Source: Mustelus asterias (lineage: Eukaryota). Taken from it: a stretch of DNA of 64,000 bases. Location of the stretch: NCBI RefSeq assembly GCF_964213995.1, contig NC_135829.1, forward strand, positions 17,670,001-17,734,000, read 5' to 3'. This document shows, in pieces, positions 18,197 to 52,499 of the stretch (position 1 is the stretch's first letter; every line of letters begins with the position of its first letter). The position numbers and the translations under genes are program-made. The notes beneath the pieces are model-generated. The model worked only from the letters and a program-made list of their open reading frames with translations, did no database searches and was not told where the DNA came from.

Positions 18197-18447
18197 TCAG
18201 TTGTCCTCCATTTTAGAATAAATCGGATTTTCTTCCATTTCTAGCGGGCAATGCTTTGGGTCATTTTCCTCCAGGCGGGGCTGTGTCACCGTGTTTCCAA
18301 GACTCTCAGTCCCAGGGTAGCTGATCAAAGAGTAAGTCTGGTCATTGGATGAAGCAATGGGATCTTCCTCTTTCAGCGATGTGTGGTCTTTGGGCTCAAT
18401 GGCTGAAGAGCTTTCAACCTGACTCCCATGGTTCAGGTGATCTTTGC
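18197..18447 (-). CDS. Gene A exon 10 (terminal), QTYSLI and ENPIYSKM motifs, TGA stop
   Basis: Acceptor ctctcttaatatctag|; open frame of 83 codons including the stop at 18199-18197; missed by the ORF track. Confidence 0.8.
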
Positions 18448-21400
18448 CTAGATATTAAGAGAGATTGTGTTTAATGAGGATTAGCAGCAATCGGGGACAA
18501 ACAATTATAGCGGACTGTTTCACTACATGGGATAAATGTTCAGGAGTTTTAGAGCAGTTACAGGGTTGGATTATATTGAAAGAATGAAACCACTTACATT
18601 TCCCTCCCTGGGTTTCAGTTTTGTCTCCATTACTTAGGAAAATAGAAAATGAAACAGTAAAAATTGAGTCACAAAAGATTCAAACAATATTAAACAGCTC
18701 CAAGTGGAGACTTGATTCAACCATTTTTTCCATGGGATCTGGATTTGAATCTAGCCCAGACTGAAATTCTCTCATTCATATTGTTTCTCTCATTGTTCTT
18801 CTTATCTCTCTGATCCTCCCTGTCTGTCCTTCACATTGTCTCTCTGATCCTCCCTCCCTCCCTGTGTGTATCTCTCCTTGTCTTTCTGTGTCTCTCTCAT
18901 TGACTCCATCACGAGGATGACCAACGCCCAGTGCAAGGGGTGGGTGTGCCTCTAAACCTCAGTGGGGTGGGGTGGGGTGAACTACACACAATCCATTCAG
19001 CTACAGGAGGACCCAAAACCAGGCCAGGCCAAATGCATGCTCAGAAACGACCTGTAAAAGAAGAAACTGGGGACAAAAGACGTCCCAGGAAGGCCTGAGC
19101 CACAGGGACACAGGGTGAAAGGCCAACCTACGGGACAGTCCTGAAAATGCAGGATGGTTGGTCAGCCTGGTCAGGATTCTCCAGCTCTGCCCATGGCAGG
19201 AAACATCACGGGTAGGACGGAAAATTTGACGGACCAGCAAAAGGTCCATTGACTTAGAGTGGAACAAGTGGTGGCAGAGGCTGGGGATTGGATGGGTAGA
19301 AGAACAAAAGAGAAGTTCTGTCATTGAAGGAAGGATAGGCGAGATTAAATGACGAAAGGTTCCAGGGTAAAAAGTCAAAAGTCGTGGTAAAGGGACGTAA
19401 AGAAACAAAAGCTGTGTCTAGAAGAGGTGTGAATGACAGGAAAGCAACCATCTGAATGTAAAGTAAAGAAACTGAGAAAGAAGTAAGGGAAAAACAAACA
19501 AAGCTTCAAAAAGAAAGATGCAAAACAAAATGAGGGCAGAGATTATCATTTAAAATTGTTGCCCAGAAGACTGTAAAGTTGAAATTGAGGTGCGGTTCCT
19601 TGTACTTGTATTGAATTTCATTGGAACTTTGCCACAAGCCAAGGACAGAGCAAGGTGGAGAATTAAAATGTCAAGTAACTGGGAGCGTGGGGTCACGCTC
19701 ACGGACTGAATTGGAGTGTTCCACAAAATGGTCACCCAGTCTGTACTTAGTCTCCCCAAAGTAGAGGAGGCAATGTAATAAGCAGCAAATACAAAAACTA
19801 ACTACATTTTGTAAAAACGGGTAAATCGCTGTTCCACTTGGAATGAGTGTTTGGGGCCTTGAATGGTGAGAAAGGAGGAGATAGAAGGTCACAAGTTGTA
19901 TCTCTCATTCTTGCACTGAAAGGGAGTGTTGGGGGTAACCAAGGGGTGAGCCAGGTTCTTGTGAAGGGAACAGTCTCTTTAGAGTGCTGAAAGGGGAGGG
20001 GATGGGTAGATGTGTTTGGTGATTGGAGGTAGTGGCAATGGAGGACCATCCATTGACTATGGAGACTGGTGGGGTGGGAGATGAGGATATGGGATTCTGA
20101 AAGGAAGGGGAAGGGGAGGGAGCAGAAGTGCAGGCAAAAGTACAAACAGGGCCAAGTACCTTGCTGTGGTGAACCATTGTTGGTTCCCACCAGGTAGTGC
20201 TGAGCCATGGTCTGACCAGTACTATGAGTCTGTATATATGTTACTGTTGGGGTTAGGGTTGGGCTGTTCTACCTGTTAATATTGTTGTTATGGTACACCC
20301 CAGTCGGCTCCGCCTCCTGGGAGAGGTATAAAGGTCACTGCTCTGCCTGGTGACCCTTTAGTCTGGGATCGTGTACTGTATATGGTAGCTCTGTTATTGT
20401 TGGCAATAAAAGCCTTTATTTCCCGAGTACATCACGCCTCTCGTGTGTTATATCACGCATCAATTTTCTTGCCAACAAGTAAATTCTTTTTTTTTGAAAA
20501 AAAAAACGACGAAGAAAACATGGAGCAAATGCTTAAATCCGAACGGTTTACGTTGGACCCACGTGCGGCGGGCGCTTCGAACACTTTCGACCACTGGTTG
20601 AAGTGTTTCCAGGATTACCTCGACGCCTCCACAGCGGTCAATGACGACGCCGACAGACTCCGGGTCCTCCACGCGAGGGTAAGCGACGCTGTATACCTGG
20701 TGATCCGTGGGGCCGCCGACTACAAAGGGGCCCTCGAGCTTCTCAAGAAGCGATACAACAAACCGCCGAACGAGATGCATGCTCGATATCTTCTAGCCAC
20801 TCGACGGCGGCAGCCCGGCGAAACGACGGAACAGTACGCGTGCGAGCTTCAACAGCTAGCCAGAGCCTGCAACTGCAAGGCAGTGTCGGCAGACCAGTAC
20901 ATGAACGACCTAGCTCGAGATGCGTTCGTGGCGGGAATCGGCTCGTCGTACATCCGTCTTCGCATGTTGGAGCAAGGTAACCTCGATCTCACTAAATCCA
21001 TAGAGTTAGCTGACGCTCTAGAAACGGCCTCCAAAAGTCTGGCGATGTACCCCGACGACCACGTGGAGACAGCGTGGCAGGGGCAGTCGCAGACTCCACT
21101 TCATTCAGCGGGACCGAAAAACTGCGCGATCGCGTTCCCAGCCTCGGACCTGACGACGGCAGCAGCTCCAGGTGGCCCACGGTGTTACTTCTGTCGGGGG
21201 GTGAAACACCCTCGGCAGCGATGTCCAGCTAAAGCGGTGTTGTGCTCCGGCTGCGGCAAGAAGGGGCACTATTCCAAGGTATGCCGGTCCAAACTTCCAT
21301 CCAAGAACAGCAGTGCGGCGTGTGACTCCCCAGAGCCGGCCTCCTTGTCTTCTGCATCTTCAAGGTCTTCCGCAACGTGCGATTCCAGGACGTCGCCATT

Positions 21401-24400
21401 CCGGACGACGGAGTCGCAAGACACGTGCGACCTGCAGGGGCCGCAGGTTTTGGCGCCATCATCCACATGCAACCTATGGGGTCAGCCATTTTGGTCGGCA
21501 CCGACCGCAAATGACCAGCAGGGGTCGTCATCAACCATCTCAGCCACCTGCAGTTGCGCCCACGAACCAACGGTGGCGTCGATCATCCTGGACCAGGCCA
21601 AGCCTCACAGACTCGACAAGTCCATGATGGACATACAGGTAAACAAATGCCCGATTTATTGTTTGTTTGACAGCGGGAGCACGGAGAGCTTCATTCACCC
21701 TGACACCGTGAAGGGGTGTGGTCTCCAGATTCGGACTGTCAAGCAGACAATTTCGATGGCGTCAAGGTCCCGGTCTGTCACTGTGCTAGGGAGCTGCGTG
21801 GTAAATCTGACGGTGCAGGACACAGTCTACGAGAACTTCAAGCTCCTTGTGTTACCGCACCTTTGCGCGCCAATACTCCTAGGACTAGATTTTATGGTCC
21901 ACTTAAAGAGTGTAACCCTGCAGTACGGTGGGCCACTCCCTCCGCTTTCAGTGGGAGACCCGCAGCCTCTAAATTGCCCAACGCGCTCCACATGTAGTCT
22001 CTCAACGCTTAGGATTACCACACCCTCCCTATTCCAGAATCTTGTGCCAGGCTGCAAGCCCATCGCAACAAAGAGCAGGCGTTACAGCGCTGAAGATCGG
22101 ATCTTCATTCGATCTGAAGATCAGCGGCTCCTCAAGGAAGGGATCATCCAACCTAGCGCTAGTCCTTGGAGAGCGCAAGTCGTGGTGGTTAAGAATGGGA
22201 ACAAACCCCAGATGGTCATAGACTATAGTCAGACCATTAACAGATACACGCAGCTGGATGCGTATCCCCTCCCGCGCATATCTGACATGGTCAATCAGAT
22301 TGCGCAGTACCGGGTGTTCTCCACCATCGACTTAAAATCTGCTTACCACCAACTCCCCATTCGCCCAGAGGACCGACAATACACGGCCTTTGAGGCGGAT
22401 GGTCGCCTGTATCAATTTTTAAGGGTTCCTTTTGGTGTCACGAATGGGGTCTCGGTCTTCCAGCGTGCTATGGACCGAATGGTGGACCAGAACGGACTGC
22501 GGGCTACCTTCCCGTACCTGGACAACGTCACCATCTGCGGCCATGACCAGCAGGACCACGATACCAACCTTCTTAGATTCTTATGCACTGCATCTCGCCT
22601 GAATCTGACCTACAACAGGGAGAAGTGTGCATTCCGCACGCGCCGCCTAGCTATCCTTGGATACGTGGTGGAAAATGGGGTCCTTGGCCCTGATCCAGAC
22701 CGTATGCGTCCCCTCCTCGAACTTCCCCTGCCCACTAGCGTCAAAGCACTGAGAAGATGCTTCGGCTTCTTCTCATACTACGCACAGTGGGTTCCCAATT
22801 ACGCGGACAAAGCCCGTCCGCTCATCAAGTCTACCTCTTTTCCCCTAGCAACAGAGGCTCGATTAGCCTTTGCAAGAATAAAAGCCAACATCGTGAAAGC
22901 CACGATGCACGCTATCGATGAGTCCATCCCCTTCCAGGTGGAGAGTGATGCATCTGATTTCGCCCTGGCCGCCACACTTAACCAGGCGGGCAGGCCCGTC
23001 GCCTTTTTCTCTCGCACCCTCCAAGGCCCTGAAATTCGACATTCGGTGGTGGAAAAGGAGGCCCAGGCCATTGTGGAGGCCGTTCGGCATTGGCGCCATT
23101 ACTTGGCGGGCAAACGGTTCACTCTGCTCACGGACCAGCGGTCCGTGGCGTTCATGTTCAACAACACGTTACGGGGTAAGATCAAGAATGATAAGATCTT
23201 GAGGTGGAGAATCGAACTCTCCACCTACAATTATGATATCATGTATCGTCCAGGGAATCTCAACGAGCCCTCGGATGCCCTGTCGCGCTAGTATGCAGGA
23301 GAATCGATTGCAGGCTCTCCACAATGACCTCTGCCATCCGGGGGTCACTCGGCTCTACCACTTCATAAAAGCCCGGAATCTACCCTACTCGGTGGAGGAT
23401 GTCAGGTCCATAACCAGAAGCTGCCGGGTATGTGCGGAATGCAAACCGCACTTCTACCGACCTGACAGGGCACAACTCGTTAAGGCCACTCGTCCCTTCG
23501 AAAGACTGAGTGTGGACTTAAAGGGCCCCCTTCCCTCGACAGATCGGAACGTGTACTTCCTCAATGTGGTTGATGAGTACTCACGATTCCCTTTTGTCAT
23601 TCCCTGTTCTGATATGACCGCTGCCACGGTTATCAAGGCATTCCGTGATCTTTTCACCCTGTTCGGTTACCCCTGTTACATCCACAGCGATAGGGGCTCG
23701 TCGTTCATGAGCGATGACTTGAGGCAATACCTGCTCTCATATGGGATTGCCTCTAGTAGAACCACGAGCTACAACCCAAGGGGTAACGGACAGGTCGAAC
23801 GAGAGAATGCTACAGTCTGGAAGGCTGTCTTATTGGCGTTGAGGTCTAAAGGTCTTCCAGTCTCTCGTTGGCAAGAGGTACTCCCTGATGCGCTCCACTC
23901 CATACGCTCACTCCTGTGTACGGCAACCAACGCTACTCCTCATGAGAGAATGTTTTCATTCCTTAGGAAGTCTTCCTCTGGGACCTCATTACCGTCTTGG
24001 TTGACGTACTCAGGACCTGTCCTCCTGCGGCGGCATGTTAGGACCCGCAAGTCCGACCCTTTGGTTGAACAGGTCCATCTCCTCCACGCCGACCCTCAGT
24101 ATGCCTACGTGGCATATCCTGGCGGGCGAGAGGACACGGTCTCGATTCGAGATCTGGCGCCAGCAGGGGGCTTGGAAACCCCTGTCGCTCCCACATCTAC
24201 TGTTACGGACCCCCCAACCATTATTTCCCCTCCTGACACGGCGCGGGCAGTATCGGGACCACCACTTAACCCTCTTACTCCCATGTACAGCTTGCCTGAG
24301 TCCAGGAGATGGTCGCCACTTCAAGGCGTGCCCGAGTTCAGCGGATTGTCACCACCTCGGGGTCTACCGGCTCGTGAGGCACTGGAGGAGTCGCTGGACA

Positions 24401-27400
24401 TCGCCTTGGAGAGAACGTCACCGCGATTGCCTGAACCGGTGTTATCGCCGGTGTTGAGGAGGACACAACGATGGTGCAGTCCCCCTGACCGTTTGAACTT
24501 ATAGACAAATGGACTATTTTTCTGTGCTTTGTACCCCGCCGGCCTTTGTTTTCAAAGGAGGGGTGAATGTGGTGAACCATTGTTGGTTCCCACCAGGTAG
24601 TGCTGAGCCATGGTCTGACCAGTACTATGAGTCTGTATATATGTTACTGTTGGGGTTAGGGTTGGGCTGTTCTACCTGTTAATATTGTTGTTATGGTACA
24701 CCCCAGTCGGCTCCGCCTCCTGGGAGAGGTATAAAGGTCACTGCTCTGCCTGGTGACCCTTTAGTCTGGGATCGTGTACTGTATATGGTAGCTCTGTTAT
24801 TGTTGGCAATAAAAGCCTTTATTTCCCGAGTACATCCAGCCTCTCGTGTGTTATATCGCGCATCACTTGCCAACCACTGTGGGACATGAGAATAGGAAGG
24901 AAGGTGCAAGCATGATGAAATCCTCGGCTGAGGGAAAAGGAAGGCATATCAAAAATGCTTATATTAAACATCAGCTTCTTCAAAAAATGAGATGGCAATG
25001 GAGAACATGGGAAAATGAACTAGAATCTTTACATGAAATGGAGTGGGAGAAAATGTAGTTAGATAATTGTCAAGTCTGTGTGAATATTGGCATCCCCAGA
25101 AATTGAGTCAGCAAAGTCAAGGAAGGGAAGCAAAGAGTCAGAGACGGACCAAGTGAAAATGAGAGAAGGGTGGAAATTGGATGCAAAGCCAATGACAATT
25201 CAGAGAGCAGGGTGAGACCTGGAAATGTTGCTGACATTGTTATCAATGTACAAGAAAAAGAGATGAGGGAGAAAGCCTAAGGAGGATGGGAGTAAAGATT
25301 ATTTCACATTGATTCTCTCACTATCTCTTTACCTGGCTCTCTCTTGCCCAGTTTCTTTGTTTAATTCTCTCTCTCGTTCTGTCTTTATGTCCGTCTCTCT
25401 TTTCTCGCTGTCTCTCTCCCTTTCTCGCTGTCTCTCTCTCTCCCTTTCTCGCTGTCTCTCTCTCTCCCTTTCTCGCTGTCTCTCTCCCTTTCTCGCTATC
25501 TCTCTCACTTTCTCGCTGCCTCTTTCTCGCTGTCTCTCTCACTTTCTCGCTGCCTCTTTCTCGCTGTCTCTCTCCCTTTCTCACTGTCTCTCTCCCTTTC
25601 TCGCTATCTCTCTCCCTTGCTCGCTGTCTCTCTCCCTTGCTCGCTGTCTCTCTCCCTTTCTCGCTGTCTCTCTCTCTTTCTCATTGTCTCTCTCCCTTTC
25701 TCACTGTCTCTCTCCCTTTCTCACTGTCTCTCTCCCCTTCTCACTGTCTCTCTCCCCTTCTCACTGTCTCTCTCCCTTTCTCACTGTCTCTCTCTCCCTT
25801 TCTCACTGTCTCTCTCTCCCTTTCTCACTGTCTCTCTCCCTTTCTCGCTGTCTCTCTCTCTCGCTGTCTCTCTCTCCCTTTCTCGCTGTCTCTCTCCCTT
25901 TCTCGCTGTCTCTCTCTCTCCCTTTCTCACTGCCTCTCTCCCTTTCTCGCTGTCTCTCTCTCTCCCTTTCTTGCTGTCTCTCTCCCTTTCTCGCTATCTC
26001 TCTCCCTTTCTCGCTGTCTCTCTCCCTTTCTCGCTGTCTCTCTCCCTTTCTCGCTATCTCTCTCCCTTTCTCGCTATCTCTCTCCCGTTCTCGCTGTCTC
26101 TCTCACTTTCTCGCTGTCTCTCTCACTTTCTCGCTGTCTCTCTCACTTTCTCGCTGTCTCTCTCACTTTCTCACTTTCTCTCTCCCTTTCTCACTGTCTC
26201 TCTCCCTTTCACACTGTCTCTCTCTCCCTTTCTCGCTGTCTCTCTCCCTTTCTCACTGTCTCTCTCCCTTTCTCACTGTCTCTCTCCCCTTCTCACTCTC
26301 TCTCTCCCCTTCTCACTCTCTCTCTCTCCTTCTCACTCTCTCTCTCCCCTTCTCACTCTTTCTCTCCCTTTCTCGCTGTCTCTCTCCCTTTCTCGCTGTC
26401 TCTCTCCCTTTCTCGCTGTCTCTCTCCCTTTCTCGCTGTCTCTCTCCCTTTCTCACTGTCGCTCCCGTTCTCGCTGTCTCTCCCTTTCTCACTGTCTCCC
26501 TGTAACGTGAGCAGTCCTCTCTGCAATGAGTTTTCACAATCAAGTTCCAATCCAGTTCCTCGCCCAGAACTGTTCATCGTTCAGTAAACCAGTTGGAGTC
26601 AATTGATGATTATGATTAAAATAAACCAAAATATTATTCTGACAAAAGTTTAAAAAAATAACTTCATACAGGGTAAAGAGAGAAGCTATTCTGATGTTGA
26701 GATAATGGGACACTATCAAATCAGGACGTGAGTACTTTACACAATCTCTGGCCATTCTATAGCTGATTTACAATTGTTTGGTTGTGAGATTGGAAGTAAA
26801 ATCAGAACATGGCTTGCATTCTGTGATGGAATAGATTCATATTTTAGGATCTTTATTTAATTCAAGTCTAAACTATTGATAAAATCCCTCTTTCTATCTC
26901 TCCCTCTCGTTCTCTCTCTGTCCATTTGTTTTTCTTTGTCTTTATCACAGTCTCTAACTCTCTCTTTCCCTCCAAGGATCCTTGGTGCAATAAGCTTGAT
27001 TGTCTAGATTCAGAGTGGTAAGAAAGTCCAACAATTTTAGATCATAATTTGCCTTCTCTTGTTTATTTCTTAGCTCCTCTACTTTGCATTCAGATGGTTG
27101 CTTTCTTGCCATTTACACCTCTTCTAGACACATCTTTTGTTTCTTCTATTGTCCAATCACCACTCCCTTTGACTTTTTACCCTAAAAGTTTTGGTCATTT
27201 AATTCTTGCTGCCATGGGGAGTGGTTGAAGCTAACAGTGTAGATACATTTAAGGGGAAGCTGGACAAGTACATGAGGGGGAAGTGAATAGAGGGTTACAA
27301 TGATAGATCAAGACGAGGAAAGATGGGATGAGGCTTTAGTAAAGTATTAAGAGCAGCTGGTTGCCCTGACAGGTCTGTTCCTATGTCACATATCCGATGT

Positions 27401-30400
27401 AATCCTATGTAATTTGTAGTTTATACAGATCAATGCGCAAATTGGGACTTTTACTCAAATAGGTGGTCTGTGAGAAATGCATGTCCAATTTCCATGCCCC
27501 CACCCCCTCCCCCCAAAGTTGTGGTTGTATGGAACATGGTTAAGAGAGTGCAGAGAAAGCTTTGTACTATGCCTAATCTTTACAGCCTGATCTTCAGTGC
27601 CCCAACCAATACAGGCTGGTCAAAGTGGAACAGTGTCCATTCATCAGCATGAGTTCCTTCACTACATTGACTATTGTCTAATCCTCCATTCCCCAACAAA
27701 AATCGTTGTTGCCAGTACTGGAAGGGATTCTGAAATCCTATTTACCCTTGAACTGATTCTTTGATCAGACAGTACACATGCTCTGTGGAGGCAGAGGTTG
27801 AGTGGGCGCCCTGTCCTTCTCCAGGCCCTAGCTGGCTCTTTGTCATTGGAACTGTGGTCACTGCGTACGCAACATGCTCATTTTCATCTGTCTGTTCCCT
27901 GCTGGGAAACACCGAGTATGGTAAACCTAGAAAGAAGGATTGGAACACAAGATCTGGTTTTAGTTTTAACTCTCCAGATGATAGGTTCGGTAGACCTGGG
28001 TAGTAATTCTGGTCACTTACATTCATCTTCCTGTGTCAGTTGCACATCACCGTCCCTACAGTTATAAAAAAAAGATCTATAAATATTTCAATAATTGGAC
28101 AAAACCATGCAGAAATGTCCAAATACTGAGTGAATCCTCTGCCTACCTCTGTCCTGGTGCTGAGGATCCTTCGCAAATGTAACAAGATTGGAAAGGCAAA
28201 GTTAAAAATCTTTGTAAGGAGTCTGTATTAAATACAATTTAAGACTTAGATTCAGCTTTTTAAAACTCTGACTTACCTTTGGCCATTTGTCGTTTTCTTC
28301 TGACTATGCAAATTACTCCAACAATGCAAATGAGCACAACCACGCACACTATGCCGATAATCACAGGTATAATTTTATGGTTTGAATCTGCAGAGAAGAA
28401 GCAACAGTAAATTCAGGATGTACAATCCTGTATGACGGATCATTCCAGTTAGAATCTAGAATAGTCAATGGTGAAGGAAGGAAATTGAACCAATTTACAA
28501 CGGGTACAAACTGTACAAACAGACCCAGAATCTCTCAGCTGGAACCCCTGACATTGAATGATTCATGTTGCAGATTGTCTTACTTTTTAGAGTATCAAGA
28601 AGCAGAGGTGATTTTAAGTGTTTGTACCGTTGGATATTAGAAATGAGTTATAGATTTACATGAGTTTAACTTAGTGTTCCTGTATAAGGAAAGGTAAACC
28701 TCCAGTTAGATTCATATTAAACAATGTTTGCTTGTATGGAGGGATTTTTTAGAATCATAGAATCCTACAGTGCAGAAGGAAGCCATTTGGCCCAGTGAGT
28801 CTGCACCAAACACAATCCCACCTTATTCCCATAACCCCACATATTTATCCTGCTAATTCCCCTAACACTAGAGTCTATTTATCATGGCCAATCAACCTAA
28901 CCCGCAAATCTTTGGATTGTGGGAGCACCCGGAGGAAACCCATCCAGACACTGGGAAAATGTGCAAACTCCACACAGACAGGAATTGAACACAGGTTCTT
29001 GGTGCTGTGAGGCAGCAGTGCTAACCACTGTGCCACCATTTCAGTTCAAACTGTGGTAACATTATGCTAAGAGAGTTTACAGCATGTAAAATAGATAAGA
29101 GCTTAGGGAAAGAATTAGATGTTGTTTAGCAACCAAGGTTTACTTATAGGGGAAGAGACCTTACTGTGTTCTTAGTTTAACTGAGCCAGAGTAGAAGGAG
29201 CTTAGCAGTGAGAGAGGGAACATCTCTCACTGCTTTGCCAGAAGAAAAGCCATATAATAGAGTAACGGGCAAGGAAGCAAGTGTCAGAAATCTAAAAACA
29301 GCCAGTTAAGGAGGATGAAGAGAAGTCTCCAGGAAGTCTGAAGTTAAAGGAACAGAGGAAACTGGAACAAGGTTACAGACAGAGTTGAGAAGCTGAAGCG
29401 TTTGCTGGTGAAAAACAGAGATATCTGAAATTATTTCAAAGTTTTTGAGATTTACTATAGCCTGGAAAGTGATAGTTGAAGCAATTGTGAAGTAATTAGT
29501 CACTGGATCTTTTAATGTTTGTGTGAAAGCTTGAAAGCATTCAAGACAAAGGAACATTGAAAGGAGAGCTATAAAACCTGGAAGTGGATCCTTGTTGGGG
29601 AAAAGTGAAAGAAATAATTGTTTGAAAGAAGATTCTAAAGTGTGTCTTTTTGAGAGTGGGGTTTGGAATCACTCATGTGGAAGTCAGAGTCCAGTAAGAT
29701 CAGTTGGCTCATGGTGTGAGAATCATCTGGGGAGATTTGAGAAGAAGTCCACAGAAGTTCACTTGGGTGGCGTCTGCCACTTGGTTTCAGAATGGAGTGT
29801 GTTTGACCACAGTTAGCCTGTGGTTTAAAGGGATTGTGTGTTTACTGAGACCATTATAGCATAAGATATATTTTGTAACCTCTGTCATCCTTAAAATCCA
29901 TGTATATTTGTGAAGATAAGTGGGAATGAAGGAGTATTGTATCATAGTCAAACTTTTCATGTTCAATAAATGTTTTTTTTGTTGTTAAAAGGTAATTGTT
30001 AGTCCTGTGACTCTCTTCATTCCCATTTTCTAAAAGATATGTAAAAGTTATGGTCTTTTAAGCCAAGGTTCCATTTGGAATCATCCGGTCCAGTAGTAAC
30101 ATACACAGAGATACACTCACTGTTAGTCACTGGAGATATTCCAGATGTTGAGGTGAGGGTGTCTGGGGATTCACTACTTGAGATTGGACTCCTTGTTACC
30201 TGGTCTGAGAAACATAATTTCCCAGTTAGAATCTGGAATGATAAATGACGAACGATGGAAATTGAGCCAGTTTACAACAGGTACAAAATCCCTCAGCTGG
30301 AATTATTGATATTAAATGATTTAAATCATATCGTGCATTGTCTGACTTACCTTCATTATTTGTAGGAGTTGCACTGCTGGTCACTGGAGATATTCCAGAT

Positions 30401-33400
30401 GTTGAGGTGTGAGTGTCTGGAGAGTCTGCACTTTTTGTCACACTGAGGGAGATGTTTGCTGTAATCTTCCAGACAGGTTTCCCTGAAGCCTGACCGTGTA
30501 CAACACAGAGATAGCTCCCAGTGTCCAACTCCTTCACTGAGTGAATAGTGAGGTTGTGAGTCTGGATTTTATTTGTTGGATTGTTTGAGCTTTGGTTGGA
30601 GATTCTTTGTGATGACTCTTTATCCACACAGCAGTGTGTGTTAGAATGTGGGCTATAACCCTCAATATGAACAGAGTGCAGACACTTGTTGATATTTCCA
30701 GATATGATCCAAAGCAGAGTGAAGGGCAGAGATTTTCTATTCTCAAACTGGCAGGGTAAAGTCACATTCTCTCCCTCTGCTACAGTCAGTGACGAGGAAG
30801 TTTCAACAGCAGAAAATACTTCATCCGAATCTAGAAACAATATTGAAAAGAATAATTTTACTCAAATAATCTCCAACGCGGTACTTTGTCAAAGGGTTTC
30901 CAAAAGTCCATGTTAACTACATTCACTGCATTTCTCCATCTACTTTGTCTGTTACCTCCTCAACAGTTTATCAAGAACATCGGGCAGAATTTTTCGTTCT
31001 TTTGTGGCCTGCCAGCTCCACTGCCGGCTTTTCCCACCATAATTTTTGATACTTGTTCAAAATAAATTCAGGAGGTGGGTCCCAAATGTCACGCTGGCGG
31101 GGCAGCCACTGATTGAACCTGTCCCTCCAGCAACCTCAGACTTCAAGAGACCCGGCATCTTTCAAACCAAACCAATAAAAAAAAGAGGGGATCCCACCGT
31201 CCCCCACCCCCCCCCCCCCCCCTCCACGGACATGGGGAGCCCGCTCCCTCCCATCGCCCTCCACTTCCACGCAGACGCCCCTTCCCAGCGATGCCCCCAT
31301 CACCAGGGAATACCATCTCCCACAGACCTCCCCATTGGAAGCCCACTCTCTCCGGCAATTCCCTCTGGCACTGCAGTGCCAAGGGGCAGTGTCAGGAGAT
31401 GCTGCCAGGACAGTTTCCAGGCATGACCCTCTACCCCCTTGGGGCTGTACTTCCTGTGCACCCAAGGTGGGTTCTCTTCGCTAGGTCCCTGTTTGTGCCA
31501 TGGTGGCACAGCGGTTAGAACTGCTGCCTCACAGCGCCAGGGACCCGGGTTCGATTCCCGGCTTGGGTCACTGTCTGTGCGGAGTCTGCACGTTCTCCCC
31601 GTGTCTGCGTGGGTTTCCTCTGGGTGCTCTGGTTTCCTCTCATAGTCTGTTTAGGTGCATTGGCCGTGCTAAATTCTCCGTCAGTGTACCCGAACAGGTG
31701 CCACACAGGGATTTTCGCAGGGGATTTTCACAGTAACTTCATTGCAGTATTAATGTAAGCCTACCTGTGACTGTAATAAATAAACTTTAAAACTTTAAAC
31801 TGTTTGTCAAAAGCTGTTATAAACCCCACTGAAGCGAGGGGGGAAATTGAAGGGTAAGGGGACAATAGAGTGGGAAGCCCGTTAATGAGATTAAAATGTG
31901 TGGCAATGGGATTCCCGACCTTTCATGGCAGGAACTAACATCACAGACGGGAAATCCCGACTGCGTAAAAGCCATTTGGGGACTCCCGTTGATTCTCCGG
32001 CCCCACCGCCATTCCCACTGACCAAAAACGGGGGAAAATCCTGGCCATCATCTTTGGAATCTGTCGGTTGCGTCTCAATTTTTACTCTTTATTTACATGC
32101 TTGATAATTTCATCTCCATAAAGAATCTATAATTGTCTCGAATGGCAGCTATTTGTCCTAATGCCTCCCCTAATATCTCAGCTTAAATCTTCCCAATGTC
32201 CCCCTGTGATAATTCCCCCGATATCTCCAGTTCACTCACCGTCCGGGTTTATCACAAAGAACAAGTTGTGGTTTTCACATCCCTCCCCTGTCAGGGTTTT
32301 CCAGTTTGGACATTTTGATGATTCTGTGGAATCCTGAACCGTGCAGGTAAATATCATCGAATCATCACATAGCATCACATCGAATGTCAGTGAATTCATT
32401 TCACTTTCATTTCTTTTGCTTGTTTGACACTGCAGCTTCTCTTTCTGTTTCTCATGATCGATATTTTCACAATCCTGCATTTTCTTCTCTTCTGTCTCAC
32501 ATTGTATTTTCTCAATTTCTATTTCAGCACTGAAATCCCGAATGCTGCACAATGTTCCGACATTCCCAGCACCAGTGGGTGTGTTGCATTGCAGAGTGGT
32601 GACATCTCCTGATCCTCGAAAATGGAGATAGGTGGATCCTGCAGGGATAAGGACAGAATTGGACGGAGATAAATAACATTCCATACAGGAAAGATAATTA
32701 AACATTAATGTTCATCAAAACCTCGCGCAGTAAATGAACAATTGTGATTTTTGTTAGTCCACACAATGAGCTGGTCCTGGACCAAATTGACATGGGGAAG
32801 GGTAAGGTATTGGAGGTGTTGGCAGCCTTAAAAGTGAATAAATCTCCAGATCCTGTTGAATTGTGCCGTAGGCTGCTGTAGGATGCAAGAGAGGAGATTG
32901 CAGGGGCTCTGACCCAAATTTTCAATTTCTCTCTGGCCACGGGGAGGTGCCAGATGACTGGAGAACAGCTAATGTGGTTCCCCTATTTAAGAAGGGTTGT
33001 CGAGATAAACCAGGGAACTACAGACCAGCGAGTCTCACAGCAGTGAATAGAAAACTATTGGAGGAACTTCTGAAGGAGAGCATCTATTTCCACTCAGGGA
33101 TAGTCAGCATGGCTTCGTCAGAGGGAGGCCTAACAAATTTGATTGAATTTTGACCATGTGTGTAGATAAGGGTAGCGCAATCGGTTAGGTTTATATGGAT
33201 TTCAGCAAAGCTTTGAAAAGGTCCCACATGGGAGACTTGTAAAGAAGGCAAATGCACATGGGATACAGGGTAATTTGATAAAGTGGATTCAAAATTGGTT
33301 TAGCAGTAGAAGTTAGAGAGTGATGGCAGAAGGTTGCTTCAGTGACTGGAAGCCAGTTTCCAGTGTCATACCGCAGGGATCTGTGCTGGGCCACCTATTA

Positions 33401-39400: not shown

Positions 39401-42400
39401 TCAAACAATGACGAGACAGAGTACAGGAATGAGATAGAGAATCTGGTGAATTGGTACGGCGACAATAAACTCTCCCTCAATGTCAACAAAACGAAGGAGA
39501 TTGTCATCGACTTCAGGAAGGGTAGTGGAGAACATGCCCCTGTCTACATCAATGGGGGCGAAGTAGAAAGGGTCGAGAGCTTCAGGTTTTTAGGTGTCCA
39601 GATCACCAACACCTGTCCTGGTCCCCCCATTCCGATACTATAGTTAAAAAAGCCCACCAACACCTCTACTTTCTCAGAAGACTAAGGAAATTTGGCATGT
39701 CAGCTACGACTCTCACCAACTTTTACATATGCACCATAGAAAGCATTTTTTCTGGTTGTATCACAGCTTGGTATGGGCTCCTGCTGTGTCCAAGACCGCA
39801 AGAAACTACAAAAGATCATGAATGTAGCCCAATCCGTCACACAAACCAGCCTTCCATCCATTGAATCTGTCGACACTTCCCGCTGCCTCGGAAAAGCAGC
39901 CAGCATAATTAAGGACCCCACGCACCCGGACATTCTCTCTTCCACCTTCTTCCAGCAGGAAAAAGAGACAAAAGTCTGAGATCATGTACCAACTGACTCA
40001 AGAACAGCGTCTTCCCTGCTGCCATCAGACTTTTGAATGGACCTATCTTGCATTAAGTTGATTTATCTCTACACCCTAGCTATGACTGTAACACTACATT
40101 CTGCACTCTTACGTTTCCTTCTCTATGAACGGTATGCTTTGTCTGTATATAGCGTGCAAGAAACAATACTTTTCACTGTATACTAATACATGTGACAATA
40201 ATAAATCAAATCAAATCAAATGCGACAACCCATTATACAGGAAGTAGTAGCTGGAAATTTAGAAAACCATAACATAATCAAAACTTGTACACAAATCACT
40301 AAATATTAGCATACAGATACAGCAAAAATTAGGAAGGCAAATAGAATGTTGTCCTTTATTGCAAGAGGGATACAGTATATAATTGTTACAACTGTACAGG
40401 GTATTGGTGAGACTTACCCTAGAATATTGTGTACGGTTCTATTCTCCTTACTTAAGCAGCATTGGAGAAAGTTCAGAGAAGGTTTGCTAGTTTGATTTCT
40501 GGGACGAAGGGTTATCTTATGTGGAAAGGTTGACTAGGTACCTGTAGAGTTTAGAAGAATGTGAGGTGATCTTATTGAAGCATGTAAGATTCTGGGGTGC
40601 TTGATGGAGTAGGTGCTAGAGGATGTTTCCCTTTATGAAGGAAGAATCTAGAACTAGGGGGATGTTTCAATATAAGGGGTCTCCCATTTAGGACAGAGAA
40701 AGATTTTCTTCCCTCAGAGGGTCATTAATCTTTGGAATTCTTTACCCCAGGGTGTAATGGAGACTGGATCATTGAATATATTCATGGCTGAGCTTTGACT
40801 GACAAGCAAGTCAAGGTTTGTGGGCGGGTAGGTAGGAAAGTGAAGTTGAGGCCATGATAGATCAGCAATGATCTTATTGCATAATACAGCAGGATCGAGG
40901 GGCTGAATGGCCCAATTCTTTTCTTATCTCTTATGTTGTGTCTCTCCAAAACCCAGTTTAGGACATAGAACAGTACAGCACAGAACAGGCCCTTCGGCCC
41001 ACGATGTTGTGCCGTGTTTGTTGACACTATTCTTACAGAGATCCATTTGTACCTGTGTGGTGAACCATTGTTGGTTCCCACCAGGTAGTGCTGAGCCATG
41101 GTCTGGCCAGTACTATGAGTCTGTAGATATGTTACTGTTGGGGTTAGGGTTGGGCTGTTCTACCTGTTAATATAGTCCTTATGGTACACCCCAGTCGGCT
41201 CCGCCTCCTGGGAGAGGTATAAAGGTCACTGCTCTGCCTGGTGACCCTTTAGTCTGGGATCGTATACTGTATATGGTAGCTCTGTTATTGTTGGCAATAA
41301 AAGCCTTTATTTCCCGAGTACATCCAGCCTCTCGTGTGTTATATCGCGCATCAATTTTATTGCCAACAAGTAAATTCTTTTTTTTTGAAAAAAATACGAC
41401 AAAAGAAAACATGGAGCAAATGCTTAAACCCGAACGGCTTACGTTGGACCCACGTGCGGCGGGAGCATCGAACACTTTCGACCACTGGTTGAAGTGTTTC
41501 CAAGATTACCTCGACGCCTCCACAGCGGTCACCGACGACGCCGACAGACTCCGGGTCCTCCACGCGAGGGTAAGCGACGCTGTATACCTAGCGATCCGTG
41601 GGGCCACCGACTACAAAGGGGCCCTCGAGCTTCTCAAGAAGCGATACAACAAACCGCCGAATGAGATCCATGCTCGATACCTTCTAGCCACTCGACGGCG
41701 GCAGCCCGGCGAAACGACGTAACAGTACGCGTGCGAGCTTCAGCAGCGAGCCAGAGCCTGCAACTGCAAGTCAGTGTCGGCAGACCAGTACATGAACGAC
41801 CTAGCTCGAGATGCGTTCGTGGCGGGAATTGGCTCGTCGTACATCCGCCTCCGGCAGTTGGAACAAGGTAACCTCGATCTCACTAAAACCATAGAGTTAG
41901 CTGACGCTCTAGAAACGGCCTCCAAAAGTCTGGCGATGTACCCCGACGACCACATGGAGACAGCGTGGCAGGGGCAGTCGCAGACTCCACTTCATTCAGC
42001 GGGACCGAAAAACTGCGCGATTGCGTTCCCAGCCTCGGACCTGACGACGGCAGCAGCTCCAGGTGGCCCGCGGTGTTACTTCTGTGGGGGGGGCGAAACA
42101 CCCTCGGCAGCGATGTCCAGCTAAAGCGGTATTGTGCTCCGCCTGCGGCAAGAAGGGGCACTATTCCAAGGTATGCCTGTCCAAACTTCCATCCAAGAAC
42201 AGCAGTGCGGCATGTGACTCCCCGGAGCCGGCCTCCTTGTCTTCTGCATCTTCAAGGTCTTCTACCACGTGCGATTCCAGGACGTCGCCATTCCGAACGA
42301 TGGAGTCGCAAGACACGTGCGACCTGAAGGGGCCGCAGGTTTTGGCGCCATCGTCCACGTGCGACCTATGGGGACAGCCATTTTGGTCGGCACTGACCGT

Positions 42401-45400
42401 GAATGACCAGCAGGGGTCGTCAACAACCATCTCAGCTGCCTGCAGTTGCACCCACGAACCAACGGTGGCTTCGATCATCCTAGACCAGGCCAAGACTCAC
42501 AGACTCCACAAGTCCATGATGGACATACAGGTAAACAAACGCCCAATTTATTGTTTGTTTGACAGCGGGAGCACGGAGAGCTTCATTCACCCAGACACCG
42601 TGAAGCGGTGTGGTCTCCAGATTCGGACTGTCAAGCGGACAATTTTGATGGTGTCAAGGTCCCGGTCTGTCACCGTGCTAGGGAGTTGCGTGGTCAATCT
42701 GACGGTGCAGGGCACGGTTTACGAGAACTTCAGGCTCCTTGTGTTACCGCACCTTTGCGCGCCAATACTCCTAGGACTAGATTTTATGGTCCACTTGAAG
42801 AGTGTAACCCTGCAGTACGATGGGCCACTCCCTCTGCTTTCAGTGGGAGACCCGCAGCCTCTAAATTGCCCAACACGCTCCACATGTAGTCTCTCAACGC
42901 TTACGATTACCACACCCTCCCTATTCCAGAATCTCGTGCCAGGCTGCAAGCCTATCGCAACAAAGAGCAGGCGTTACAGCGCTGAGGATCGGATCTTCAT
43001 TTGATCTGAAGTTCAGCGGCTCCTCAAGGAAGGGATCATCCAACCTAGTGCTAGTCCTTGGAGAGCGCAAGTCGTGGTGGTTAAGAATGAGAACAAACCC
43101 CGGATGGTCATTGACTATACCATTAACAGATACACGCAGCTGGATGCGTATCCCCTCCCGCGCATATCTGACATGGTCAATCAGATTGCGCAGTACCGGG
43201 TGTTCTCCACCATCGACTTAAAATCTGCTTACCACCAGCTCCCCATTCGCCCAGAGGACCGACAATACACCGCCTTTGAGGCGGATGGTCGCCTGTACCA
43301 TTTTTTAAGGGTTCCTTTTGGTGTCACCAATGGGGTCTCGGTCTTCCAGCGTGCTATGGACCGAATGGTGGACCATAACGGACTGCGGGCTACCTTCCCG
43401 TACCTGGATAACATCACCATCTGTGGCCATGACCAGCAGGACCACGATGCCAACCTTCTTAGATTCTTATGCACTGCATCTCGCCTGAATCTGACCTACA
43501 ACAGGGAGATGTGTGTATTTCGCACGCGCCACCTAGCTATCCTCGGATACGTGGTGGAAAACGGGGTCCTTGGCCCTGATCCAGACCGTATGCGTCCTCT
43601 CCTCGAACTTCCCCTGCCCACTAGCGTCAAAGCACTGAGAAGATGTTTAGGCTTCTCATACTACGCACAGTGGGTTCCCAATTACGCGGACAAAGCCCGT
43701 CCGCTCATCAAGTCTACCTCTTTTCCCCTAGCAACAGAGGCTCGCTTAGCCTTTGCAAGAATAAAAGCCGACATCGCGAAAGCCACGATGCACGCTATCG
43801 ATGAGTCCATCCCCTTCCAGGTGGAGAGTGATGCATCTGATTTCGCCCTGGCCGCCACACTTAACCAGGCGGGCAGGCCCGTCGCCTTTTTCTCTCGCAC
43901 CCTCCAAGGCCCTGAAATTCGACATTCGGCGGTGGAAAAGGAGGCCCAGGCCATTGTGGAGGCTGTTCGGCATTGGCGCCATTACTTGGCGGGAAAACGG
44001 TTCACTCTGCTCACGGACCAGCGGTCCGTGGCGTTCATGTTCAACAACACGTTACGGGGTAAGATCAAGAATGATAAGATCTTGAGGTGGAGAATCGAAC
44101 TCTCCACCTACAATTATGATATCATGTATCGTCCAGGGAAGCTCAACGAGCCCTCGGATGCCCTGTCGCGTGGAACATGCGCCAGTATGCAGGAGAATCG
44201 ATTGCAGGCTCTCCACAATGACCTCTGCCATCCGGGGGTCACTCGGCTCTTCCACTTCATAAAAGCCCGGAATCTACCCTACTCGGTGGAGGACGTCAGG
44301 TCCATAACCAGAAGCTGCCGGGTATGCGCGGAATGCAAACCGCACTTTTACCGACCTGACAGGGCACAACTCGTTAAGGCCACTCGTCCCTTCGAAAGAC
44401 TGAGTGTGGACTTTAAAGGCCCCCTTCCCTCGACAGATCGGAACGTGTACTTCCTCAATGTGGTTGATGAGTACTCACGATTCCCTTTTGTCATTCCCTG
44501 TTCTGATATGACCGTTGCCACGGTTATCAAGGCATTTCGTGATCTTTTCACCCTGTTCGGTTACCCCTGTTATATCCACAGTGATAGGGGCTCGTCGTTC
44601 ATGAGCGATGACTTGAGGCAATACCTGCTCTCATATGGGATTGCCTCTAGTAGAACCACGAGCTACAACCCAAGGGGTAACGGACAGGTCGAACGAGAGA
44701 ATGCTACAGTCTGGAAGACTGTCTTACTGGCGTTGAGGTCTAAAGGTCTTCCAGTCTCCCGTTGGCAAGAGGTACTCCCTGATGCGCTCCACTCCATACG
44801 CTCACTCCTGTGTACGGCAACCAACGCTACTCCTCATGAGAGAATGTTTTCATTCCCTAGGATGATATTCCTCTGGGACCTCATTACTGTCTTGGTTGAC
44901 GTACTCAGGACCTGTCCTCCTGCGGTGACATGTTAGGACCCGCAAGTCCGACCCTTTGGTTGAACAGGTCCATCTCCTCCACACCAACCCTCAGTTTGCC
45001 TGCGTGGCATATCTTGACGGGCGAGAGGACACGGTCTCGATTCGAGATCTGGCGCCAGCAGGGGGCTTGGAAACCCCTGTCGCTCCCACACCTCCTGTTA
45101 GGGACCCCCCAACCATTATTTCCCCTCCTGATACGGCGCGGGCAGTATCGGGACCACCACTTAACCCTCTTACTCCCGTGTACAGCTTGCCTGAGTCCAG
45201 GAGATGGTCGCCACTTCAAGGCGTGCCCGAGTTCAGCGGATTGTCACCACCTCGGGGTCTACCAGCCTGTGAGGCACTGGAGGAGTCGCTGGACACCGCC
45301 TTGGAGAGAATGTCACCGCGATTGCCTGAACCGATGTCATCGCCGGTGTTGAGGAGGTCACAACGACGGTGCGGTCCCCCAGACCGTTTGAACTTATGGA

Positions 45401-48400: not shown

Positions 48401-48950
48401 AGTAGTCTGATCACTCCCTAATCACGCAGTCTGACCCCTCAATCACATAGTCTGGCCCCCATCACTAACCTGGCCCTCAATCATGTCGTCCACATAGTCT
48501 GACCCCCCATCACAAACTCTGATCTCTTCCCCGTCACACAGTCCAACCCACCCAATCATCGAGTCTGATCTCCACCCTCACACAGTCTGAGCCCTACGAC
48601 ACACTCTCATCCCCCCATTTGCACATTCTGACCCCCCCTCCCCCCCACCCCCGCCCCCCCCAATCCCCCCTCCCCCCCAACCCCCCCCTCCCCACCCCCC
48701 CACACCCCACCCCCCCTTCCCCACCCCCCCTCCCCACCACCCCCCCACACCCTACCACCCCCCTCCCCCCCCACCCCTCCCCCACCCCTCCCCCCACCCC
48801 CCCCACCCCCCCCACCCCTCCCCCCCTCCCCCCACCCCTCCCCCCACCCCTCCCCCCTCCCCCCCTACCCCTCCCCCCCCCCCCCCACCCCTCACCTGTA
48901 GCATGATGGAACAGAAGCAAAAGACCCACAGATAGAGCACCGAGTGCCAT
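18197..48950 (-). CDS. Gene A (whole span): 10-exon type I membrane IgSF receptor, 550 aa (leader, Cys-rich Ig-like D1, V-set D2, S/T/P stalk, TM, Tyr-motif tail); uncharacterised family
   Basis: Manual exon chain: 48950-48896, 32638-32240, 30830-30351, 30204-30121, 28387-28277, 28168-28147, 28055-28021, 27926-27746, 18632-18598, 18447-18197. Lengths 55+399+480+84+111+22+35+181+35+251=1653 nt, open throughout. All introns GT..AG with matching phases 1,1,1,1,1,2,1,2,1. Confidence 0.85.
18598..18632 (-). CDS. Gene A exon 9, 35-nt cytoplasmic exon (NGDKTETQGGK)
   Basis: Acceptor ttttctattttcctaag|, donor AAT|GTAAGT, phase 2-1; resembles exon 7. Confidence 0.75.
20165..24865 (+). mobile_element. 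Full-length Ty3/Gypsy LTR retrotransposon, copy 1 (Mag-like double zinc knuckle)
   Basis: LTRs 20165-20462 and 24568-24865 (298 bp, TG..CA); TSD CTTGC; PPT aaaggaggggtgaa; domain order gag-PR-RT-RH-IN. Confidence 0.97.
20520..24504 (+). pseudogene. Gypsy copy 1 gag-pol, open from gag through RNase H, with integrase frameshifted by an 11-bp deletion near 23288
   Basis: CYFC..H..C/CSGC..GH..C, FDSGS, YLDN, ESDAS, HHCC, SVD/HSDRG/GQVER. Copy 2 retains tggaacatgcg at the junction. Confidence 0.9.
25360..26500. repeat. Pyrimidine-rich minisatellite, about 20-bp unit TTTCTCGCTGTCTCTCTCCC
   Basis: Direct reading of the tandem units. Confidence 0.95.
27746..27926 (-). CDS. Gene A exon 8, cytoplasmic Tyr motifs LPYSVF, VAYAVT, HVYCLI
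   Basis: Acceptor ccttctttctag|, donor AAGG|GTAAAT, 181 nt, phase 1-2. Confidence 0.8.
28021..28055 (-). CDS. Gene A exon 7, 35-nt cytoplasmic exon (DGDVQLTQEDE)
   Basis: Acceptor ttttataactgtag|, donor AAT|GTAAGT, phase 2-1. Confidence 0.75.
28147..28168 (-). CDS. Gene A exon 6, 22-nt cytoplasmic microexon (GSSAPGQR)
   Basis: Pyrimidine tract then AAG|, donor AG|GTAGGC. The phase 1->2 switch is required to keep exon 7 open. Confidence 0.7.
28277..28387 (-). CDS. Gene A exon 5, transmembrane helix (IIPVIIGIVCVVVLICIVGVICIV-RRKR)
   Basis: Acceptor ttcttctctgcag|, donor AAAG|GTAAGT, 111 nt, phase 1-1; hydrophobic run followed by a basic stop-transfer motif. Confidence 0.9.
28750..29037 (-). 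mobile_element. HE1-like SINE
   Basis: Head ggcacagtggttagcactgctgcctcacagc on the minus strand. Confidence 0.85.
30121..30204 (-). CDS. Gene A exon 4, Ser/Thr/Pro stalk (DQVTRSPISSSESPDTLTSTSGISPVTN)
   Basis: Acceptor tgtttctcag|, donor AACA|GTGAGT, 84 nt, phase 1-1; repeats SPDTxTSTSGISPVT of exon 3. Confidence 0.75.
30351..30830 (-). CDS. Gene A exon 3, V-set Ig domain D2 plus start of stalk
   Basis: Acceptor ttgtttctag|, donor GAAG|GTAAGT, 480 nt, phase 1-1. EGENVTLPC, LLWI, NLTIHSVKELDTGSYLC V-set hallmarks. Confidence 0.92.
30982..32046. mobile_element. Harbinger-like non-autonomous element with a nested SINE (about 31500-31795, plus)
   Basis: Imperfect TIRs gggcagaattttt / gaaaatcctggcc; 3-bp TSD ATC. 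Confidence 0.55.
32240..32638 (-). CDS. Gene A exon 2, atypical Ig-like domain D1 (9 Cys, no core Trp)
   Basis: Acceptor ccttatccctgcag|, donor GACG|GTGAGT, 399 nt, phase 1-1. GDVTTLQC (B-strand-like) and LCDDSMIFTC (F-strand-like). Confidence 0.8.
32770..33920 (+). mobile_element. CR1-type LINE fragment with internal deletion
   Basis: PDDWRTANVVPLFKKG..PGNYRP; FTRMLSGM..; (tatga)n-like tail. Confidence 0.9.
34080..36230 (-). mobile_element. Nested stack: old LINE 3' end > HE1-like SINE (about 34168-35841) > CR1 (34226-35548)
   Basis: SINE halves rejoin as gagtctgca|ccgaccacaatcc; tgccttc is duplicated around the SINE; CR1 RT motifs QHGF, DFSKAFD, GVPQGSVLGP, KFADD. Confidence 0.85.
37555..37871. 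mobile_element. hAT-family MITE
   Basis: 14-bp TIRs cagtggttcccaaa / tttgggaaccactg; perfect 8-bp TSD CCTTATAC. Confidence 0.92.
37956..38395 (-). mobile_element. Penelope 3' end/pseudo-LTR with hammerhead motif at 38053-38089
   Basis: Homologous to 13500-13906; CAC-CUGAAGA..GAAA-GCU-U-GUG. Confidence 0.85.
38440..38785 (-). mobile_element. HE1-like SINE
   Basis: Similarity to the other copies. Confidence 0.8.
39140..40220 (+). mobile_element. Rex1/Babar-type LINE 3' fragment inserted in a CR1 remnant (about 38960-40930)
   Basis: GAPQ, KFADDTTVVGRI, (caaat)n tail. Confidence 0.88.
41056..45760 (+). mobile_element. Full-length Ty3/Gypsy LTR retrotransposon, copy 2 (decayed ORF)
   Basis: LTRs 41056-41353 and 45463-45760; TSD ACCTG; PPT; stops at about 41720 and 43002; frameshifts at about 42090 and 44870. 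Confidence 0.97.
46350..47270 (+). mobile_element. Old LINE RT/3' fragment
   Basis: QNSILGPIILSCF..MQQDLNNIQA remnant. Confidence 0.55.
47560..48015 (+). mobile_element. Old SINE, DeuSINE/SacSINE-like
   Basis: tRNA-like head tggctcagtg..tgggttt; tail ctatataaatgtaagtctttc. Confidence 0.5.
48630..48890. repeat. C-rich low-complexity tract (G-runs on the minus/transcript strand)
   Basis: Direct reading; abuts the exon 1 donor. Confidence 0.9.
48896..48950 (-). CDS. Gene A exon 1, signal peptide MALGALSVGLLLLFHHAT(G)
   Basis: ATG, hydrophobic leader, phase-1 donor ACAG|GTGAGG; close paralog at 4313-4367. Confidence 0.85.
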
Positions 48951-52335: not shown

Positions 52336-52499
52336 GTTTGCTAGGTGTTCGTGTTCTGAAGTGCCGAATAGGGGAGCTCATAATCGATGAGGCTCAGGAG
52401 ATCTATTGACAATCCTTGGCGATCATAACAGGGGTGACTAGGGACTGAGGAAGGGAGGGTCTGAGGATAAGGGGGGCATTGGGCATTGAGCTGCTGGAC

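Follow-up and report, generated by a model that had tools for sequence, protein, structure and literature searches.

In a 64,000-nt stretch of the Mustelus asterias genome (contig NC_135829.1, positions 17,670,001 to 17,734,000; hereafter the window), we analyzed LOC144480561, a minus-strand gene (48950..18197) encoding a 550-aa receptor of the immunoglobulin (Ig) superfamily. The gene is almost certainly genuine and intact. From its sequence and that of its neighbor, we consider it reasonably likely that the two genes form a tandem pair of Ig superfamily receptors, in which LOC144480561 is the long-tailed (L) partner, with a phosphotyrosine tail of probably inhibitory or regulatory function, and the neighbor an adaptor-coupled short-tailed (S) one. 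The product is a type I membrane protein with two extracellular domains (D1 and D2), a variable-length stalk, an uncharged transmembrane helix and a ~180-residue tail containing six tyrosines. Members of its family occur outside cartilaginous fish as well, with a range from sharks to birds and monotremes.

The gene, rebuilt from the window DNA, has ten exons, here called E1 to E9 plus the cassette E3b (Table 1). All nine introns are bounded by GT..AG, the exon phases chain as 1,1,1,1,1,2,1,2,1 without a stop, and the coding total of 1653 nt equals 550 codons plus the stop codon. The model shows no sequence difference from RefSeq XP_078056272.1 (P0185, 550 aa), ‘uncharacterized protein LOC144480561 isoform X1’ of M. 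asterias, an automatic prediction without name, family or function. This entry contains all ten exon peptides in order with one residue between each, and the split-codon residues (G, D, D, N, G, R, C, G, C) agree in nine of nine cases. Isoform X2 (531 aa) lacks E5 and E6 and isoform X3 (522 aa) lacks E3b; the cassette is present in P0185 and P0167 and absent in P0183. Every exon, micro-exons included, is conserved in other sharks. A sequence-only reading of the window had proposed ten in-frame minus-strand exons with GT-AG introns, a complete and intact 550-aa product and a layout of leader, two Ig domains, stalk, transmembrane and small cytoplasmic exons; the rebuilt transcript, the identical RefSeq protein, the exon table and spliced contigs from three related species bear this out, and all 11 peptides quoted in that reading map to the minus strand in the places given. 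Its description of the gene as hidden in repeats is fair because exons make up 5.4% of the 30.75-kb span and the introns hold retroelements, a satellite and a G-rich run, but the gene was not hidden from annotation, as RefSeq has the exact model.

That same setting, with 1653 exon nucleotides spread over 30.75 kb of retroelement- and satellite-containing DNA, and with the E1-E2 and E7-E9 joins outside the contig coverage described below, could suggest a pseudogene or an artefact joining unrelated open reading frames (ORFs). The intact frame, the nine GT-AG introns, the spliced contigs, the identity with an independent RefSeq model and the conservation of every exon in other sharks speak against this explanation, which looks refuted and to which we assign next to no weight. 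Between E4 and E7, a single frame-breaking 56-nt exon (28076-28021) was considered and rejected because the ortholog peptide LSAPGPRGGDVQLMQEAEC shows two micro-exons of 22 and 35 nt and because the numbers of unplaced contig letters (58 and 172, see below) fit these exactly. E6 and E8 are equal in length and phases but share only 16 of 35 bases; a derivation of these tail exons by duplication is plausible.

For splicing evidence, four sequencing runs (X1, X2, X5 and X8) were mapped to positions 27700-32750. Run X8, which is DNA from the same organism, gave one contig over 27700-28502 with one differing letter. From each of runs X1, X2 and X5 came one contig (1749, 2580 and 2673 letters, respectively) that matches E7, E4, E3 and E2 and leaves out the introns. 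These contigs differ from the window at 33 of 911, 76 of 1048 and 84 of 1008 letters, respectively, and therefore derive from related species rather than the source animal. In the X1 contig, the adjacent record letters 1533 and 1534 bring 30830 directly next to 32240, the exact E3-E2 junction, and the piece at 28276-28387 covers E4. Between 27924 and 28276, the same contig leaves 58 letters unplaced (2 + 35 + 22 - 1), and the X2 contig has 172 between 27924 and 30353 (2 + 35 + 22 + 111 + 2); both micro-exons are therefore present, and E3b is skipped, in the X1 and X2 transcripts, while E3b is covered in run X5. For the E1-E2 join across the 16.3-kb intron, we infer the connection from the RefSeq model and from pieces of X2 and X5 that extend three letters (CAG) beyond the E2 start, as expected from the end of E1.

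Several aspects of these data count against the gene model or are not accounted for by it. The E1-E2 and E7-E8-E9 joins lie outside the mapped region, and runs X1, X2 and X5, all from other species, are presumed to be RNA, with none recorded as such. All three spliced contigs cover 27754-27924 and end 8 nt short of the annotated E7 end at 27746. About 24 nt at the E3 end are missing from X1 and X5. Run X5 (organism C) moreover covers 30065-30206 with 9 gap letters, which takes in the cassette and a further 56 nt downstream of its donor; this extension could be a longer exon, the use of another donor or partial intron retention. A donor at 27754 (GTTCAA) was rejected for E7, as it puts E8 out of frame (TAA) and the RefSeq model and orthologs use 27746. 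The contig end at 27754 likely reflects a 3-nt indel in the relatives (ESAVKS in Scyliorhinus versus ESVQG in the window), and an alternative GTTCAA donor may also occur. The junctions predicted from the letters alone are, in sum, spliced at the expected borders over E7-E4-E3-E2 in three relatives, none of them M. asterias. Separately, two short intronic repeats (28750-29040 and 31500-31790) reached extremely high contig depth in each of the four runs (as much as 1.7e7 in X8); they belong to a very abundant family, resembling short interspersed nuclear elements, that is common to the related species.

The paired organization became apparent from the next gene downstream, LOC144480428, which is of the S type. 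Its ectodomain is 92-93% identical to that of LOC144480561 (proteins P0002, P0105, P0106 and P0184 match the window exons at 123/132 residues in D1 and 125/135 in D2), and its leader is of the same type. The transmembrane segment is of another type (VLYVAALICSNGVICII), with an Arg at its start and a polar residue, and is followed by a 10-residue tail, VTEANVKFKN, which corresponds to an E8-type exon translated in another frame. A copy of such an exon lies between the two genes, upstream of the LOC144480428 leader, and looks like a tandem-duplication relic or an unused alternative 3' exon. P0002, tried as the Mustelus ortholog of LOC144480561, was rejected as it represents this short-tailed paralog.

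Both transmembrane types recur across shark orders: the L-type segment IVCxVVLICIVGVICIIRRKRQ with a long tail behind it, and the S-type segment LVLYxVALICxDGVICIIRR. The mid-membrane residue of the latter is Asp in five of seven shark species (P0103, P0168, P0174, P0187 and P0176), Asn in Mustelus and His in Hemiscyllium. Within species, L and S ectodomains are 85-99% identical in all five species having both, while identity between species is 50-62% for D1 and 58-77% for D2; D1 evolves faster than D2. Judged by these sequence comparisons, the excess of within-species over between-species identity fits paired receptors whose ectodomains apparently evolve in concert. Paired inhibitory and activating Ig-like receptors include SIRP, PILR, CD300, KIR and CEACAM1/3. 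The shark locus resembles these in having adjacent genes with near-identical ectodomains and unlike transmembrane and tail regions, one product combining a long tyrosine-containing tail with an uncharged transmembrane helix and the other a short tail with a polar one. It differs from them in the lack of sequence membership, in the order of an Ig-like followed by a V-set domain, in the S-type Asp in place of Lys or Arg and, for this species, in the lack of a strict immunoreceptor tyrosine-based inhibitory motif (ITIM). Co-evolution within CEA families is treated in the accessible parts of two publications (PMC2832619, PMC5112662).

The tail tyrosine motifs pointed out in the sequence-only reading do exist, but in this species they are not strict immunoreceptor motifs. 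A scan of all six for strict ITIMs, immunoreceptor tyrosine-based switch motifs (ITSMs) and activation motifs (ITAMs) gave no match; LPYSVF misses the ITIM consensus (S/I/V/L)xYxx(I/V/L) by a Phe at +3. The only strict matches are an NPxY (NPIY) and an overlapping YxxM (YSKM). As the tail lacks any tyrosine in a strict ITIM or ITSM context in this species, the direction of signaling is something that we infer. A canonical ITIM is present at the EC-x-PY site in five of eight other shark L orthologs. NPIY occurs in all eight, nine of nine with the window protein, and is the sole tail motif in all. Besides the outcome of the strict scan, three findings argue against an inhibitory receptor with an adaptor-coupled partner. 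YxxM is found in three of the eight orthologs (Carcharodon, Cetorhinus and Heterodontus). Among 29 non-shark tails of at least 40 aa, strict ITIMs number six and strict ITSMs seven, with one YxxM and no NPxY. Lastly, classical activating receptors carry Lys or Arg as the polar transmembrane residue, and that of the S type is acidic (Asp), making the adaptor model uncertain.

These tail data bear on two alternative functions. As a surface protein for adhesion or endocytosis, or one of mucin-like type, LOC144480561 would use NPIY as an internalization signal or as a docking site of the phosphotyrosine-binding (PTB)/talin type, and the stalk would be a sialomucin. The invariance of NPIY in the nine shark L proteins, the 59% Ser/Thr/Pro content of stalk plus cassette and the lack of strict ITIMs and ITSMs in this species are in line with such a role. 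We nevertheless regard it as rather unlikely: L/S pairing, homogenized ectodomains and a polar S-type transmembrane residue form a paired immune receptor signature, and the membrane-proximal EC-x-PY site is kept family-wide, whereas NPIY is found in 0 of the 29 non-shark tails scanned. The second alternative is a costimulatory or activating receptor acting through YxxM and phosphoinositide 3-kinase (PI3K), the mode of signaling of CD28, ICOS and JAML. It could draw on the YSKM that overlaps NPIY at the C terminus, on the three orthologs with the motif and, as leads only, on JAML-like and CD226 clusters among ESM Atlas look-alikes; it seems improbable, as the motif is missing in five of eight other shark orthologs and present in one of 29 non-shark tails, the ectodomain has two domains and the similarity to PD-1 and CD226 is in the generic Ig range.

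For the favored L/S receptor pair, a mechanism can be proposed. D1 and D2 would bind a ligand, and the L tail would become tyrosine-phosphorylated and recruit effectors with Src homology 2 (SH2) or PTB domains. Phosphatases might be recruited through the ITIM-like EC-x-PY-S-V-V/F site, and a PTB protein might dock on the invariant NPIY. The S form would signal in the opposite sense through a transmembrane-associated adaptor, and gene conversion would keep the L and S ectodomains similar to each other, a situation known from paired inhibitory/activating receptors.

The identity of the two extracellular domains was addressed by searches run exon by exon, in which neither the spliced 550-aa model nor P0185, P0167 and P0183 served as queries. 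D2 is a V-set domain, as the sequence-only reading had stated. Its exon passes Pfam V-set PF07686 with 37.9 bits against a gathering cut-off of 26 (E 2.2e-9), and orthologs pass as well. V-set hallmarks are a B-strand Cys, a C-strand Trp, a D-strand Arg and a DxGxYxC motif in E-F; D2 carries these as LPC, LLW, QRIS and DTGSYLC; its C' strand holds an additional Cys, and an HCC motif is also present. Invariant in 48 relatives are W192, C201 (C' strand), D254, G256, Y258, C260 and W272, and near-invariant are C178 and R227 (≥90%) and C218.

D1 had been described as highly atypical, a view that probably does not hold in the sense of a foreign fold, as the domain aligns with tetrapod D1, which keeps the Ig pattern of B-strand Cys, C-strand Trp and GGxFAC. 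Its exon matched no Pfam family, gave nothing significant in PDB (best E 0.49 for the exon and 0.035 for a 10-sequence D1 profile) and had no usable match in the ESM Atlas. Of the 60 matches listed for the D1 profile, 58 were to chains of the Ig superfamily, with the alignment falling on the B-C strands. The D1 alignment conserves LxC, WY and GGxFAC and a C...C-x-H/Y-x-FFIV end. Sharks have a charged, Cys-rich insert, and the core Trp of the other sequences, retained also in Heptranchias, has given way to a Cys in Mustelus and Rhincodon. Using hhalign, shark D1 aligned with tetrapod D1 at 95.8% probability (E 6.8e-9) and with bony-fish D1 at 92.8% (E 4.1e-7), compared to 99.9% for D2 versus D2 and 0.2-1.5% for D1 versus D2 controls. 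A shark-D1 hidden Markov model recovered tetrapod N termini weakly (5 of 165 proteins, E 6.5e-4 to 1.5e-3). By its pattern, D1 is a derived Ig-like domain, and its homology extends across the family.

To place the receptor among named families, we compared it with their signatures and scores. D2 matched TCR alpha (E 0.0088), PD-1 (0.012) and pIgR (0.031) in phmmer, and the family profile matched CD226 D2 (3.9e-7) and VISTA (4.5e-5) in PDB. Together with one Varanus protein automatically named PD-L1, these hits could indicate a divergent member of a named family (CD300/MDIR/pIgR-like, TIM, NITR, PD-1/CD28, CD226/TIGIT or CEACAM). The scores fall within 1308 generic Ig matches, however, and PD-1, TCR alpha, pIgR, CD226 D2, SCN1B and VISTA give whole-domain alignments to D2 at generic Ig level and have no comparable D1, for which Pfam offers no match. 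Family-specific motifs are also absent. TIM proteins carry the signature WGxGxC, which a regular-expression scan did not find in D1 or D2; KYWC, as in CD300, pIgR and MDIR, was not found in D2, and the pIgR match covers residues 82-132 only (E 0.03). The G strand of NITR and other VJ-type receptors has a J-like FGxG motif; scanning all exon peptides for [FW]GxG gave none. The PD-1/CD28 family has a single V-set ectodomain as opposed to two domains here; PD-1 reached phmmer E values of 0.012-0.23 and was absent from the 60 best profile matches. According to the accessible text of the carp SITR paper (PMC3031540), the CD300-type V domain is marked by two pairs of Cys, by a WCR in strand C and by an FTV in strand E, whereas D2 has five Cys and, in the corresponding strands, LLWIIS and NLTIHS. 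The same text applies the word ‘rare’ to an arrangement in which a non-V Ig domain near the N terminus precedes a V-type domain near the membrane, the order seen in the LOC144480561 protein; SITR itself is soluble.

Attempts at placement by Pfam (exons plus seven relatives), PDB (D2 exon, D1 exon, family and D1 profiles) and the ESM Atlas returned nothing specific, the last with a turtle relative yielding generic V-set clusters (‘cd7 antigen-like’, CD226 and JAML-like). Nearly all relatives whose names were seen are, in addition, labeled uncharacterized, hypothetical or Ig-like domain-containing, and the remaining names were assigned automatically or stem from fused models: serine-rich adhesin-like, PD-L1 (the Varanus protein), LRRC40, FAM81A and CHRNA7. 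We therefore consider membership in a named family very improbable. The sequence-only reading had noted that TIM and CD300-type motifs are missing from D2 and that the protein could not be assigned to a recognized family, both of which the scans and the nonspecific Pfam and PDB results support; comparison with MDIR, NITR, CD300, TIM and PD-1 uncovered no clear ortholog in any of them.

The distribution of relatives was studied with the D2 exon, for which phmmer against 1.84 billion representatives gave 101 matches at E up to 1e-3, four of them below 1e-30; names were looked up for 30 of the 101. A subsequent profile search added P0167, whose cluster contains P0185. Relatives with the D1-D2-transmembrane-tail layout occur in 11 shark species, in bony fish (sturgeon, gar, conger, salmonids, piranha and a catfish) and in lungfish. 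The same layout is found in amphibians (newt, axolotl and two frogs), in reptiles and birds (many turtles, three crocodilians, two lizards, ducks and kiwi) and in the monotremes echidna and platypus. The family is held together by homologous D1 and D2 in the same order and by the EC-x-PY tail site; in a 48-sequence alignment, the tail is conserved family-wide as KSKGK ... (D/E)EC-x-PYA(V/I) ... E-x-(V/L)YS ... TVYA(L/V). No therian relative appeared among the 30 D2 matches whose names were looked up or in word-limited searches with a turtle query (35 proteins), the family profile (23 proteins, 8000 candidates scored) or an echidna query (two proteins, from echidna and platypus). In Heptranchias perlo, the short-tailed gene (P0001 and isoforms) has a tandemly duplicated D1-D2 unit and encodes four domains in 662-686 aa.

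Gene models from turtles (P0135, P0137 and P0141) join family exons with FAM81A, which suggests FAM81A as the neighboring gene in turtles; tblastn of these fused models against the window found nothing, so that the synteny of flanking genes raised in the sequence-only reading has a candidate from turtles that the window does not match. That reading had also suggested an undescribed receptor family of cartilaginous fish. Undescribed it appears to be, as it is unnamed and no description turned up in the literature searched (LOC identifiers, shark and platypus, ITIM, paired-receptor and MDIR/NITR/CD300 topics, outside supplements and subscription journals), but it is not shark-specific, given an architecture that reaches birds and monotremes.

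Within the window, the flanks of the gene contain no other recognizable host gene, only repeat ORFs. The introns harbor two Ty3/Gypsy-type elements, both on the strand opposite to LOC144480561, a reverse-transcriptase fragment, the 20-nt satellite and the G-rich run (Table 1).

Table 1 Exons of LOC144480561 and other features of the window
Feature	Position	Strand	Description
E1	48896..48950	-	Start codon and signal peptide, MALGALSVGLLLLFHHAT plus first base of Gly; phase 1 out; residues 1-18 of XP_078056272.1
E2	32240..32638	-	D1, Ig-like, 133 codons, 9 Cys; charged Cys-rich insert; Cys replacing core Trp
E3	30351..30830	-	V-set D2 (5 Cys, 4 N-x-S/T sites, DTGSYLC) plus 27-residue stalk, 59% S/T/P
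E3b	30121..30204	-	Optional 84-nt stalk cassette; repeat of E3 end
E4	28277..28387	-	Uncharged transmembrane helix, then RRKRQMAK
E5	28147..28168	-	22-nt micro-exon SSAPGQ, phase 1 to 2; LSAPGP / SSAPGQ in orthologs
E6	28021..28055	-	35-nt micro-exon DGDVQLTQEDE, phase 2 to 1
E7	27746..27926	-	Cytoplasmic exon with LPYSVF, VAYAVT, HVYCLI
E8	18598..18632	-	35-nt micro-exon NGDKTETQGGK
E9	18197..18447	-	Final coding exon with QTYSLI, ISYPGT, NPIYSKM and stop codon
Leader exon of short-tailed paralog LOC144480428	4313..4367	-	MALGALFVGLFLLFQHVAG then GTAAGG; 19/20 tblastn-aligned residues identical
E8-type exon copy	7970..7999 (flanks ~7940-8030)	-	Between the genes, upstream of the LOC144480428 leader; aligns with E8 and intron flanks; other frame reads VTEANVKFKN-stop
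Ty3/Gypsy-type retroelement	20382..24504	+	Protease, reverse transcriptase, RNase H, integrase; in E7-E8 intron; long open gag-pol and integrase frames
Second copy of the same Ty3/Gypsy-type retroelement	41273..44936	+	Broken into several ORFs; in 16.3-kb E1-E2 intron
20-nt satellite	25401..26498	.	54.7 copies; in E7-E8 intron
C-rich run (G-rich on gene strand)	48632..48891	.	Directly after E1 donor
DDE_Tnp_4 transposase fragment	52341-52937	-	
Reverse-transcriptase ORF	12129-13616	+	
Reverse-transcriptase ORF	34791-35567	-	

The existence of LOC144480561 was already known from its RefSeq prediction, and ‘not assignable to a family’ in the sequence-only reading amounted to annotated but uncharacterized; its family is unnamed, old and spread across vertebrates, and seems, within the searches made, to be missing from placental mammals. 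The locus offers a clean natural example of paired long and short receptors with putatively concerted ectodomain evolution, stable across shark orders. A more far-reaching interpretation, which we advance tentatively and regard as possible but doubtful, is that the undescribed family is at least as old as jawed vertebrates and was lost in therians, that the shark L/S pair predates the split of the orders with its ligand-binding exons being continually homogenized and that the S-form Asp would need an adaptor with a basic transmembrane residue, opposite to classical pairing. If true, an orphan tyrosine-signaling Ig receptor would have been kept through all of jawed-vertebrate history and be missing from mouse and human, an absence that may explain why it has no name.

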